DNA of 6,321 nt. It comes from Zygophlyctis sp. KS116. Lineage: Eukaryota; Fungi; Chytridiomycota. Position numbers and translations under genes: made by a program. Every line of letters begins with the position of its first letter. Within the stretch, counting starts at the first letter, position 1. The notes under the pieces are model-generated. The model worked only from the letters and a program-made list of their open reading frames with translations, ran no database searches and had not been told where the DNA came from. Shown one piece after another: positions 455 to 5,473 of the stretch. The stretch spans positions 1 through 6,321 of the forward strand of contig BAAFSQ010000446.1 in assembly GCA_054661495.1 (NCBI GenBank), read 5' to 3'.

Positions 455-669
455 TGTTACGGTCTGAACGATCTCAGACTGTATGAAATAAGAGTAACAA
501 CCAAAAATACTTTGTATTAAAAAGTACAAAAGATCCCTAAGTCCGAGTAAGCCTCCATAAGCACCAAGACTCGATCACTAAGCCATGTAAGCACCTAAAC
601 ATAGATCTAGCTTTATAACCTAAAACAAGAACCTAGACAGTCATTAACTTGAGTCTCTAAGACGCAACA
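455..669 (-). repeat. 3' LTR of element 1 (215 bp)
   Basis: Matches 4707-4921 except at 615/4867 and 663/4915. Minus-strand ends are TGTTGC...GTAACA, and the PPT lies immediately upstream. Confidence 0.97.
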
Positions 670-1715
670 GTACCCCCCCTCCTGAATTATCCGATTGATG
701 ATTTTCCAATTCAGCGTTAGAACTTGCTAATTCCGTGAGGCTAATCCATGGGGCTAAATACACTCCACTATGTGGGTTTTCTAATTCTGAGCCATCTGGG
801 CGCTTAAGATAATATGAGTTGTGAGGTCCGATCCCATAGATTATAAATGGGTTAACCCTTCCACTTAAATTGTAACTTTAATTTAGTATAATTTTTAAGC
901 TTCACGAATTCTCCAATCTTAAAAGTCCTATGATCCTTAGATGTACTTGCATAAGCTTCCGCATTTTGTTGAGATCTTTTTAAAGCAAGAGCTCTATTCT
1001 GTCCTAGTCTGGTTAACTCTCGTGTGGTTTGGAGAGATATATCAGATTCACTTCTGCTATAAATAAAAGTATCACCAGGGAGACGAGGATTAAGTCCATA
1101 GACGAGGTAAAATGGTGCAAATCCAGTAACATCATGTTTCCGAGCATTTAGATTAAAAACTGCAGCCGGGACGAATTCGTCCCATTTCTCGCGAGTACCC
1201 AGTGTCATTTTTGTCAACATTGCTCCTAAAGTACCATTTACTCTCTCGACCATACCATTTGTTCTTGGATGGTATGGTGTGCTTGGATAATGATTTATAG
1301 CCTGGATTTGCAGGTATTCACTTAAAGTATGCCAAGTAAAGACAGGTGCCCTGTCACTGACTATTTCTTTTGGTGCACCAAAGGCCAGCATGAGCTTGTA
1401 AATAAATTTCGCCACTGTTACGGCAGTTCTATCCGGGGTTGCTTCAGCGACTACAAAGCGTGTTGCATGATCTACGGCAACTATAATATTAGAGTTTCTC
1501 TTTTCACTTGGTTCCAGATCTTGTATAAAATCTATTGACCACCGGTAGAAGGGTAATCCAGTAGGAGGGATGGGGATAGACGGTTCTCCGCTACATCGAT
1601 TACTTCTATTTAATTGGCAGACTTTACAACTGGCTACTAGATCTTTTAAACTTTTTAGTTGCTGAGGCCACCAACCTCGAGTGCGCAGAGAATCAAATAC
1701 AGAGTCAGTGCCCAA
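644..1715 (-). pseudogene. Integrase (HHCC remnant, DDE core, GPY/F motif), frameshifted near 1716 and at 851-854
   Basis: WWP...CKVCQ, WSIDFI, IVSDRA, HPRTNGMVERVN. KWKG continues, after a 4-nt insertion, as PFIIYGIGPHNSYYLKRPDG...SGGGVLLRLRDSS* with the stop at 644-646 inside the LTR. Confidence 0.93.
673..683 (-). promoter_or_regulatory. Polypurine tract (plus-strand primer), AGGAGGGGGGG
   Basis: Purine run on the minus strand, separated from the TG of the 3' LTR by 3 nt (TAC). Confidence 0.92.
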
Positions 1716-3660
1716 AAGATTTCGTGCAGTTGAGTCACCATCTGAGTCCTCTGATTTTGACCAATGTAGGGCACCCAGTAAGATACTCCAAGATACGTCA
1801 CCTTTCTTAGTAATTTTCCATTTTTTAAATGCATATACTTCTTATTCTTTTTCAATAATGTTTTGAACATTGCCGGAAGTGAAGTGGGTAATTGAAGATT
1901 TTTAAGAATATATATAGCGAATATTGGCCAGTTTTCCATAGTAGTTTTTGAAGGGTCTTGCAGTACAGCATTTTCCAAAGGTTCTTCTTCAGAATTTTTT
2001 AGAAAAGATAGGTCGAACAACGAATCGGCATCTTCTTCTTTCTCCGAAATCGAGCTAATCAGAGATGAGTGTATATAAGATTTATTCTGATCAAACTGAT
2101 TGTCCGCTTCCGGCCTTGATAGACAATCGGCTACAACGTTTTTGGTTCCAGGAATATACGTCACCTCAAGGTTGAAATCTGATAAGAATTCTTGCCATCT
2201 ACACTGCCGCTCGTTTAATAATTGAGGTTTCTTAAAATACGTTAAATTTTTGTGGTCACAGCGTATCTTAACCGGACTATCAGTGTGAATAAGTAGGTGG
2301 CGCCAATTTTCTAAAGATGCTTTGATCGCTAGCATTTCTTTGTCATAAATGGCATAATTCCTTTCGGCACTTGTCAATGTTCGACTGTAGAAAGAAATTG
2401 GTACCTCTACTCCGGAATCACTAATCTGATGCAACGCGCCTCCTAATGCGACTTTCGAGCAATCTGTATATAGAATAAAAGTTTTTCTTCGATCAGGAAT
2501 AGATAAAAACCCTTCTTCAGCGAAACTCATCTTTAATAAGTTAAACGAAGATTCAGCATCTGCGTTCCAAATAAACTGGTTCTCCTTCTTTAGTAACGAA
2601 TAAAGGTGTCGAGCCTTTGCTGAATAATCTTTTATAAAGTTTCTATAGTAATTGCATAACCCCAAAAATCTTTGAAGAGACTTAATTCTTGTAGGAGTTT
2701 TGAAATTTAAAATTGATTGAATCTTTTCCTTTTGCATATTGACTCCTCTAGAAGAAAGTGTATGGCCAAGAAATTCCACTTCTGGTACTTCAAACACACA
2801 TTTTTCCAAGTTTGCTACCAGTTTGTTTTGCGTTAAGATGTCGAGGACTTTCAGGATCATATTTCTATGTTTGACAGGGTCTGATTCATAGATTAATATG
2901 TCATCCAGGTATGCATAAAGACCTCTACCAATCAAGTCCTGGAGAATCGTATCCATCAATTTCTGAAAGTGTCCTGGGGCGTTCTTTAATCCAAATGGGA
3001 TCACATTATACATAAATTTGCCAAATTTGGAAACAAAAGAAGTTTTCGACTCGTCCCCTTTTCGAATTCTTAACTGATGAAATGCACCTTTAAGATCAAT
3101 TTTTGTGAATAAACACCTGTTCTGTGCAGAAAGATAATGAAAAATGTCTTCAATATTAGGTAGGATAGCTTGAATAGAATCAGTAATCTTATTTAGTTCT
3201 CTATAGTCAATACAAAGCCTTAAAGACCCATCTGGTTTTTTAACAAAAAGGACTGGGCAGCCGCCATCAGCATTTGAGACTGAGATATTTCCTGATTTCA
3301 ACCCATCGTTCAAAGCGTTTCGAAGTGCGTCTTCCTCTTTGGATGAAAGCTTATAAGGGGTAGCAGAGGGCAACCTAGAACCTGGAGTGAGATTTATAGG
3401 CATGGCGCAACTTTCTTGATAATCTGGAATCTTACTTAGTTTCCCTAGATCAAACACAGACTCGTACTTTTTGAGATAATCTGGCAAGTTCGCCTCTGCA
3501 TTGTCACACTTCAATGACAATATAGAAGTGGAGCTTCCTTTGTCCTTAAAACAAACAAAGTAAACTTGCAGTTGGTCCTTCTCAGAAATTTTCTGTAAAG
3601 CTTCCATTGATACGGTGGTGGCTACAATATTTCTTTGTTTAAATTTTAGACTTCGAGTGG
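1716..3660 (-). pseudogene. pol: Pol: reverse transcriptase (about 2750-3400) and RNase H (about 2110-2480), acidic linker, start of integrase zinc finger
   Basis: VLFVKKPDGSLRLCIDYRELN, FTKIDLKGAFHQLRI, IPFGLKNAP, YLDD (2900-2911), EFLGH, LYTDCS, YDKEMLAI, CDHKNL, VADCLSR in ORF 1655-3733. Confidence 0.96.
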
Positions 3661-3683
3661 GTTTAATTTTAGACTTCGAGTGG
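3637..3683. repeat. Tandem duplication, 24-nt and 23-nt units
   Basis: gtttaaattttagacttcgagtgg (3637-3660) followed by gtttaattttagacttcgagtgg (3661-3683). Confidence 0.95.
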
Positions 3684-3726
3684 AGCAGTCGATCATTATC
3701 TGATTTTTCTCTAACCAACCCAGAAT
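3637..3726 (-). pseudogene. C-terminal remnant of the aspartic protease
   Basis: A third frame reads ILGWLEKNQIMIDCSTRSLK, resembling the retropepsin C-terminal pattern (LGxxWL....IDxxxRxLxF). It joins the pol frame if the 23-nt duplicate at 3661-3683 is removed. No D(S/T)G motif is present. Confidence 0.7.
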
Positions 3727-4643
3727 TCAACATAATCTCGGCAGACTAAACAACATTTCAACTTGAGTAGAGTTTCCTTTAAAATCGACCATTTTTCTCC
3801 TTCTAAGCTTTTCCATTTTATTTTCTGAGTATCCTGAGAAAAATTACTTAGATCCATAGGGTCACCAGCGGGTAGAGTTCCAGGAATAGTAACCGAGTAA
3901 CCATCGTGCTCCAAAGAAACAATCCTATTCGACTCTTCTGCCTTAAGATATCTCTTAATTTCTGCGTAATTTGACTTCATATCCGGATTTATTAAAAATA
4001 TATCCCTGAGATTCAATTTAACATCAGCATTCAAAGTTTTTATGACACTTAACCCGAAATCCGAGTAAACGTCAAGGCCAGCCTGAATAATCAAAGATTC
4101 AGCATCTGCTAAATGATCATGCATTCTTTTCTTTCCCTGCCTCAATTTATCCAGCTTCATTTTTGCTTGAGATCTAGATTCACGATTCATAAAATGTTCA
4201 ACAAAGCTAGAAGAGAATGCATGGAAATCACGCAATTCAGGTACATGGTAGTGACGAGATCTGTCACGCAGGGCCTGATACCAAACTTAAGCACTACCAG
4301 AGAGAAGACTAGACACAAAAGTAATCTTGGAAAAGTCATCATTAAACAATCCTGCTTTCACCTTCAGATAATCATTGACATCACCCCAAAATATATCAAA
4401 ACCTTCAGCACTACCATCGTACTGTAATGGTATTCCCAATTTTGGCGTTTTACTGATAGTAGAGTTTCTCTGAGAAAGAATATTAACCTGCTCCTGTAAA
4501 GACTGAACCATTGCAGAGAGTATTCCAAATTGGTCAGGTAGCTGAGGAGTGTGGCTTCCAGTAGGGGTATGGACTCCAACTGGGTATTCCGTATTTATAG
4601 AGAAGTTCCCTGGGGGAGTGTGAGTAGGATCCGAGAAAGACAT
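3711..4643 (-). pseudogene. gag: Gag (retrotransposon capsid-like, partial zinc knuckle), interrupted by in-frame TAA at 4287-4289
   Basis: ORFs 4287-4658 and 3711-4235 share one frame and join as LLSGSA*VWYQALRDRSRHYHVPELRDF. First ATG is at 4643. Motifs: P..YDGS, LxGxAxxWY, KLRQGK, PMDLS, CxxC. Colinear with the element 2 Gag. Confidence 0.9.
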
Positions 4644-4693
4644 TAGTTTGCACTTCAATAAACTAAAATAGACTTCTTCAAAACTATTAGGAG

Positions 4694-4704
4694 GTACTTT
4701 TTAA
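4694..4704 (-). promoter_or_regulatory. Primer-binding site of element 1, self-priming type (TTAAAAAGTAC)
   Basis: Starts 2 nt after the 5' LTR end, has no TGG, and is the exact reverse complement of the LTR 11-mer at 4769-4779. Confidence 0.82.
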
Positions 4705-4706
4705 AA

Positions 4707-4921
4707 TGTTACGGTCTGAACGATCTCAGACTGTATGAAATAAGAGTAACAACCAAAAATACTTTGTATTAAAAAGTACAAAAGATCCCTAAGTCCGAGT
4801 AAGCCTCCATAAGCACCAAGACTCGATCACTAAGCCATGTAAGCACCTAAACATAGATCTAGCTTTCTAACCTAAAACAAGAACCTAGACAGTCATTAAC
4901 TTGAGTCTCTAAGAAGCAACA
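4707..4921 (-). repeat. 5' LTR of element 1 (215 bp)
   Basis: 213/215 identical to 455-669 and lies upstream of gag on the minus strand. Confidence 0.97.
4769..4779 (-). promoter_or_regulatory. Predicted transcript 5' end / self-primer of element 1 (GTACTTTTTAA); predicted TSS about 4779
   Basis: 11/11 complementary to the PBS. The TSS is inferred by analogy to S. pombe Tf1. Confidence 0.7.
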
Positions 4922-4925
4922 CAAA
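4922..4925. repeat. Target-site duplication CAAA (right copy)
   Basis: Identical to 451-454 and directly abuts the LTR end. Confidence 0.85.
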
Positions 4926-5204
4926 CTGTTACCCCCTGTTTTAGGTGTATCAATGTTTCAATTAAAATTTGGTGATCAATTAAGCTCAAGTTACTTGAAA
5001 TTTTAAATGCTGGATTGCAAAAGCAGATGAAAAATTTGTGTATTAATTAGAAGCAATTGGATGCTTGGTTTTTCAGAAAATAAATTGGTTTTCTGAATAA
5101 CTAGTTTAATTTTTATTGATCTTTGACCAAGAGAGTTTATTGATCAATTAAGTACGAAAAAATACTAAAATCAGCTATAAAGTAAAGCCGGTTTTATCAA
5201 AATC

Positions 5205-5460
5205 TGTCAATCAGTGATTGCTTATTAAATTATCAGTCTATAAGATCCATTTAATCTTATCACTCTTATTGGTATATAATCTTATTAGAACTATTATGCT
5301 TTAGAACCTTCTAGTTTTAGGTCATCGTGTTAGGTTGAAACACGTCGGACCTTTCCTTTGTAGAAAATATCAATAAAGATATTTACTATAAATGTAATTA
5401 CTCAATAAAGATATTTACCATAAAGGGTTTTATCTGAGGTCATTAAGTTTAGATCTCACA
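5205..5460 (+). repeat. Putative 5' LTR of element 2 (end at 5460 well supported; start at TGT 5205, alternatively TGTTAG 5328)
   Basis: Ends ...CTCACA and contains TATATAA (5273-5279), two AATAAA and a U5-like hairpin. The partner LTR is outside the window, so the start is a guess. Confidence 0.55.
5370..5424 (+). repeat. 23-bp direct repeat (22/23 identical, 32-nt period), each copy with AATAAA
   Basis: tcaataaagatatttactataaa (5370-5392) and tcaataaagatatttaccataaa (5402-5424). Confidence 0.93.
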
Positions 5461-5462
5461 GA

Positions 5463-5473
5463 ATATTTTCTAC
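5463..5473 (+). promoter_or_regulatory. Primer-binding site of element 2, self-priming type (ATATTTTCTAC)
   Basis: 2 nt after the ACA end and the exact reverse complement of GTAGAAAATAT at 5360-5370. Confidence 0.8.

Follow-up and report, generated by a model that had tools for sequence, protein, structure and literature searches.

Self-priming of reverse transcription was defined in the fission-yeast element Tf1 and is mostly linked to the Tf1/sushi chromoviruses. The first 11 bases of Tf1 pair with its primer-binding site (PBS); the cut by RNase H falls between bases 11 and 12 (PMC7175516). In addition to the primer/PBS duplex, Tf1 has two PBS-adjacent duplexes, the three together being called the "pretzel" (PMC10085805). 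Self-priming is established or predicted for Tf1, Tf2, Tj1, the Tosmo elements and Tcry1 (PMC4600332, PMC10085805) and is predicted for the Tcn1 clade, including an element of Batrachochytrium (PMC2864245, PMC6317226). It is also predicted from sequence for the TAR lineage of plant Ty1/copia elements (PMC6317226), which shows that the strategy has also arisen in elements other than the Tf1/sushi group. As a mechanism, self-priming is already well known, and the element described here, together with its relatives, adds a further example.

The window analysed is the whole of a small contig of Zygophlyctis sp. KS116 (C446, BAAFSQ010000446.1), 6,321 nt long, from assembly GCA_054661495.1 (12.7 Mb in 1175 contigs). 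The largest part of the description below concerns element 1, a Ty3/gypsy-type LTR retrotransposon situated on the minus strand and read from right to left, as is seen from its pair of LTRs and from the minus-strand gag, RT, RNase H and integrase remnants between them. Its main features are as follows.

4707 to 4921, minus strand: 5' LTR of element 1 (TGTTGC...GTAACA), 215 bp, a direct repeat with 455-669
455 to 669, minus strand: 3' LTR of element 1, a direct repeat with 4707-4921
451 to 454 and 4922 to 4925, no strand: left and right copies of the 4 bp target-site duplication CAAA, read directly
673 to 683, minus strand: polypurine tract AGGAGGGGGGG, 3 nt ahead of the 3' LTR, read directly
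689 to 4643, minus strand: gag-pol remnant of element 1, broken and without the protease region, found by tblastn and Pfam

The terminus of the 5' LTR at 4707 reads ...CCGTAACA. RT, RNase H and integrase were detected by Pfam in the ORFs of the window, and a gag remnant is also located between the LTRs. Taken together, the window ORFs and the intact relatives, which have a single gag-pol ORF, display the attributes of the Ty3/gypsy type (the order gag, protease, RT, RNase H, integrase; the LTRs; the polypurine tract; the duplication), the window copy being without the protease part. The coding state of element 1 was assessed by tblastn of the intact polyprotein of a relative, on contig C534, onto the window. 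Pieces of this polyprotein map in frames -2, -3, -2 and -3, with frame shifts near 3726/3622, 1724/1715 and 855/850, and its residues ~290-446, the protease region, are unmatched in the window. The window copy is thus coding-defective and unable to make its own proteins, although its two LTRs are 99% identical and differ at just 2 of 215 positions. A 22-nt direct repeat is present in the element at 3639-3660 and 3662-3683, with a start-to-start spacing of 23 bp.

According to the initial annotation, the 5' LTR is followed by TT and not by TGG, and the LTR contains an exact complement of the sequence that comes after the TT, with 64 nt between the two 11-mers. Both statements agree with the sequence. 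On the minus strand, TT at 4706-4705 is followed by TTAAAAAGTAC at 4704..4694; its complement, GTACTTTTTAA, is at 4779..4769; and the gap between them, 4768..4705, is exactly 64 nt.

4769 to 4779, minus strand: predicted self-primer GTACTTTTTAA, the 11 nt with which the RNA (and R) is predicted to begin; an exact complement of the PBS and invariant in the sublineages
517 to 527, minus strand: copy of the self-primer motif GTACTTTTTAA in the 3' LTR, read directly
4694 to 4704, minus strand: candidate PBS TTAAAAAGTAC, 2 nt past the LTR-terminal CA, fully paired (100%) to the primer across the alignment of 10 relatives
4705 to 4706, minus strand: TT spacer from the end of the LTR (CA) to the PBS, read directly

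The duplex is exactly 11 bp long and is flanked by the mismatches T/C and T/T. Nine of the 11 motif positions are A or T, and the genome contains 58 exact copies of the motif against 38 of a reversed control, as might be expected if the match were a product of chance in AT-rich sequence. Shuffling speaks against this. When the LTR of element 1 was dinucleotide-shuffled and compared with the first bases past the LTR, allowing offsets of 0-6, 9 of the 2000 shuffles gave an exact complement of at least 11 nt; in 13 elements treated in this way, the figure was 0-10 of 2000 for each. The pattern with at most one mismatch occurs 4 times in the window, where 0.35 are expected, and a count of 4 was reached in 0 of 200 shuffles of the window. 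The pattern also recurs in all 23 elements described below, whose sequences differ. Chance complementarity was rejected on these two grounds, the shuffle tests and the recurrence, and its probability is negligible.

The comparison set consisted of 20 further gypsy loci of the genome, found with the RT protein, and five metagenome contigs encoding the closest database proteins. The junction between the 5' LTR and the leader is readable in 23 elements, 18 from this genome and five from metagenomes, the contigs encoding P0005 and P0011 being left out. In every one of the 23, an LTR-internal stretch of 10-17 nt exactly complements a sequence that begins 1-4 nt past the LTR, and in 17 of them the duplex is 11 nt long. 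The spacer between LTR and PBS in the other lineages is TT, GA, GT, AGT or xAGT. There are 16 distinct primer/PBS pairs among the 23 elements. All changes between them are compensated, none being one-sided, and wobble pairs are absent. Complementarity in other copies, on which the initial annotation had made its proposal depend, is retained throughout the readable elements and in 16 different versions. Five of the pairs are given here, primer first.

C527: AGATTAATCAA and TTGATTAATCT
L038: AGATTATTCAA and TTGAATAATCT
L040: AGAATTTCCAA and TTGGAAATTCT
C74: ATAGCGAATAT and ATATTCGCTAT
C344: ATAGCAAATAT and ATATTTGCTAT

A genome search with the LTR found about eight sublineages of element 1's own lineage. 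Their U3 regions are unalignable with one another, and near identity sets in some 8 nt ahead of the motif and continues across U5, the PBS and the leader. Neither motif nor PBS varies in any of the approximately eight sublineages. Taken by itself, such invariance would show constraint and not prove pairing, and since the pair is invariant within the lineage, the covariation was drawn only from sister lineages. Across an alignment of 10 sequences from the nearest lineages, pairing in the primer/PBS helix is complete (100%); at seven of the 11 pairs both bases have changed, and at none has a single base changed alone. As a control, one partner was slid by 1-3 columns, and this reduced the pairing to 41-51%. 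Judged by the invariance among sublineages and this covariation, the primer/PBS pairing is under selection.

Many contigs of about 4.7 kb are single elements (C534, C536, C521, C537, C515 and others; L018, L019, L027, L029, L037). The ends of each overlap within the LTR, by 71-244 bp, indicating that the assembler merged both LTRs and that copy numbers are underestimated in the assembly.

The window holds three elements in a nest. A second, different gypsy element, of the C74/C344 lineage, is situated on the plus strand to the right of element 1. Its 5' LTR ends at 5460, and its gag runs from 5478 off the contig.

5360 to 5370 and 5463 to 5473, plus strand: primer and PBS of the second element, GTAGAAAATAT and GA-ATATTTTCTAC, the latter followed by CAATAAAG

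Part of an LTR of a third lineage, resembling C521/C531, occupies positions 1-209 on the plus strand. It carries the motif GTCTTTTCAA at 76-85 and ends in ...CTCTAACA at 209. No matching PBS comes after it, and it is thus a solo LTR or a 3' LTR.

The absence of TGG from the PBS in all 23 elements bears on the possibility that the PBS binds a host tRNA or a tRNA fragment and that the match to the LTR is incidental. The host tRNA set was covered in part, by 62 located genes, which leaves this explanation some room. The comparison was made with the coordinates of these genes and not with their sequences, and the 11-mer's 58 exact matches in the genome all fall outside the 62. The initial annotation had named a host tRNA matching the PBS as evidence against its reading; by coordinates, none was found among these genes. 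There is also no tRNA gene within the window. A TTTTT run would terminate RNA polymerase III, and U5 is unexpected in an RNA polymerase III transcript. Furthermore, a tRNA does not explain why the LTR motif and the PBS have changed jointly into 16 different pairs. Priming by tRNA was rejected for want of TGG, for want of the 11-mer in the 62 located tRNA genes, and on the primer/PBS covariation, and there is only the slightest likelihood that it operates here.

The sequence between primer and PBS contains two further paired segments.

4746 to 4751, minus strand: 5' arm TGTTAC of a PBS-adjacent helix, paired with GTAACA at 4712..4707
4707 to 4712, minus strand: 3' arm GTAACA of the same helix, the last six bases of U5, paired with TGTTAC at 4751..4746
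4714 to 4731, minus strand: U5 hairpin GTCTGAG-ATCG-TTCAGAC, part of the minimum-energy fold

The minimum-energy fold of the 89 nt 4779..4691 has an energy of -18.3 kcal/mol (z = -3.07) and is closed by the primer/PBS duplex. The sixth pair of the PBS-adjacent helix covaries: lineage A has C-G and C527 has A-T, and in the two metagenome relatives the pair is G-C. The U5 hairpin is preserved in most copies of lineage A, with 81% of cells paired. A search for a third duplex of the "pretzel", between the post-PBS sequence and the interior of R/U5 in 10 relatives, gave no consistent pairing. The complementarity of primer and PBS, its conservation and covariation, the second helix and the absence of a tRNA-type PBS are all direct observations.

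Covariation reveals pairing and not its purpose. The gag ATG is just ~50 nt downstream, and a conserved long-range duplex might have another job there, in packaging, dimerisation or the translational control of gag, with priming accomplished in some other way. In every lineage, however, the paired site is the place where minus-strand synthesis must begin to give the observed LTR end, 1-4 nt past CA, and there is no other PBS. In its length of 11 nt and its flanking helix, moreover, the duplex matches the experimentally defined Tf1 system (PMC7175516, PMC10085805). It is thus unlikely that the duplex serves one of these other functions in place of priming.

Transcription is predicted to start at about 4779, where the motif begins, and the surrounding sequence fits this prediction. 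Conservation among the sublineages sets in at about this point. A pyrimidine run always comes before the motif, and 18 of 21 elements have a pyrimidine at -1 and a purine at +1. Two lineages, C493 and C503, have TATAAA about 33 nt upstream of the motif. A conserved box is located just past the motif.

4763 to 4770, minus strand: AATACAAA box overlapping the 3' end of the primer, a candidate poly(A) signal, invariant in 10 of 10 aligned relatives

Several other lineages have CAATAAA at the equivalent place, the general form past the motif being CAATA(A/C)A. The AATACAAA/CAATAAA box looks like a poly(A) signal, in which case R would end some 10-30 nt beyond it.

The position of this box is relevant to another possible origin of the primer, namely the polyadenylated 3' end of the element's own RNA, if cleavage falls immediately behind GTACTTTTTAA in the 3' LTR. 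A 13 bp duplex would then form between the TT and the PBS on one side and the motif with the leading As of the tail on the other. This would apply to the TT-spacer sub-clade (element 1, C527 and two metagenome relatives), in which TT always comes before the PBS and the motif always ends in AA. In sister lineages with the same layout, however, the PBS is preceded by GA, GT or AGT, so that a tail would be unable to extend the pairing. The AATAAA/AATACAAA box is also found just past the motif and not 10-30 nt ahead of it, a position that puts cleavage further downstream, and there is no consistent A-rich signal upstream of the motif. Priming from a polyadenylated end would be a way of starting reverse transcription undescribed for LTR elements; on the above evidence it is highly improbable.

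A single RNA-library contig falls on the window. It is 243 nt long, comes from a lake-water metatranscriptome library, matches window 4793-5035 without a difference and covers U3 of element 1 plus the flank, in the neighbouring element. The same insertion of element 1 is thus found in the lake sample, indicating that the same or a very close strain was there. The contig may represent DNA carry-over. A scan of the window for bacterial promoters and terminators found nothing, the models being irrelevant to a eukaryotic LTR.

Element 1 is a defective Ty3/gypsy-type element whose cis-acting signals are probably built for self-primed reverse transcription of the Tf1 kind. This had been proposed in the initial annotation, and the comparison with relatives supports it through the 16 covarying pairs in 23 elements and the PBS-adjacent helix. 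Priming itself is inferred, as are the places where transcription starts and RNase H cuts. Transcription would start at or adjacent to 4779, giving an RNA that begins GUACUUUUUAA. The first 11 nt of this RNA would fold back onto the PBS at 4704..4694, 2 nt downstream of U5, and the 6-bp PBS-adjacent helix (4751..4746 with 4712..4707) and the U5 hairpin would help to hold the fold. The element's own RNase H would presumably cut past nucleotide 11, and the freed 3' OH would prime minus-strand strong-stop DNA through U5 and R. If the 11-nt RNA primer is later copied by the plus strand, the PBS would be rewritten in each cycle. Such rewriting from the primer could account for the perfect match between primer and PBS, with neither one-sided changes nor wobble pairs.

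All readable members of this gypsy clade, which is diverse, has no chromodomain and comes from a chytrid and lake metagenomes, bear the signature, and it widens the known range of self-priming to early-branching fungi. This suggests that self-priming is older than the Tf1/sushi group or has arisen again independently. An annotation rule can also be stated: the PBS is 10-11 nt long, begins 1-4 nt past the LTR and matches the LTR sequence just after a pyrimidine run. The U3/R boundary becomes predictable from the motif, by sequence alone. These results are of moderate interest to transposon specialists.

No chromodomain (PF00385, E <= 0.001) was found by Pfam in six intact polyproteins or in the integrase ORF of the window; these elements may have a very divergent one. 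In a quick IQ-TREE tree, all the chytrid lineages and the chromodomain-less metagenome relatives form one clade (SH-aLRT 98) beside a chromodomain-bearing clade (99) made up of vertebrate, fungal and algal elements; arachnid elements fall outside. The tree has a midpoint root and was built without Tf1, Ty3 or other reference sequences; hence the placement of the chytrid elements in a clade of their own beside the chromoviruses is provisional. In the closest metagenome relatives, RNase H and integrase are separated by a Dam-like N6-adenine DNA methyltransferase domain.

P0002, residues 1225 to 1333 (locus L038): Dam-like domain PF05869, E = 1.8e-12, with an NPPY motif; also in P0003, P0004 and P0007

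This domain is absent from the window element and from its relatives in this genome. LTR elements carrying Dam have been described in green algae, ichthyosporeans, a red alga and Euglena, chytrids being unmentioned (10.64898/2026.05.21.726589, a 2026 preprint).

Three relatives of element 1 are situated near tRNA genes or a tRNA-like sequence. In L020 (C167, positions 2203-2289) the element is 10-12 bp upstream of a tRNA-Asn gene, and in L042 (positions 154-246) it is at such a distance upstream of a tRNA-Leu gene. In L040 (positions 1-74) the element is 10-12 bp upstream of a partial tRNA-like sequence, which was read by eye and has no ARAGORN call. These positions recall the targeting of Tj1 and Ty3.

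Of the known systems, Tf1 and Tf2 of Schizosaccharomyces pombe resemble element 1 in having an 11-nt primer and a PBS 2 nt past the CA of the LTR (PMC7175516, PMC10085805). They are also alike in the helix that joins PBS-adjacent sequence to LTR sequence downstream of the primer, and in the single gag-pol ORF, which here is that of the intact relatives. In contrast to Tf1 and Tf2, six of the present lineages have no chromodomain by Pfam, and the elements are outside the chromodomain-bearing clade in the quick tree; the third "pretzel" duplex was not found here, and the chytrid elements are known from sequence alone. Given the lack of a chromodomain and the separate clade, the likeness to Tf1 is a functional one, and membership of the Tf1/sushi group is not claimed.

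Tj1, the fission-yeast relative from Schizosaccharomyces japonicus, is similar in that its self-priming is predicted from complementarity between LTR and PBS (PMC4600332). Tj1 is about 5 kb long with 244-bp LTRs (PMC4600332), and the chytrid elements are about 4.5-4.7 kb long with LTRs of about 210-330 bp. The target-site duplication is 5 bp in Tj1 (PMC4600332), whereas it is 4 bp in element 1. Tj1 integrates within 12 bp upstream of tRNA genes (PMC4600332), comparable to the 10-12 bp seen in the three relatives of the chytrid element.

The chromoviruses of the Tcn1 clade, from Cryptococcus, mosses and Batrachochytrium (BatDenTy3-1), share predicted self-priming with the present elements and include a chytrid member (PMC6317226, PMC7175516, PMC2864245). 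Tcn1 elements have chromodomains, whereas the present clade has none and is apart from the sampled chromodomain-bearing elements. The TAR lineage belongs to another superfamily and has another gene order, but is like the chytrid elements in its predicted self-priming.
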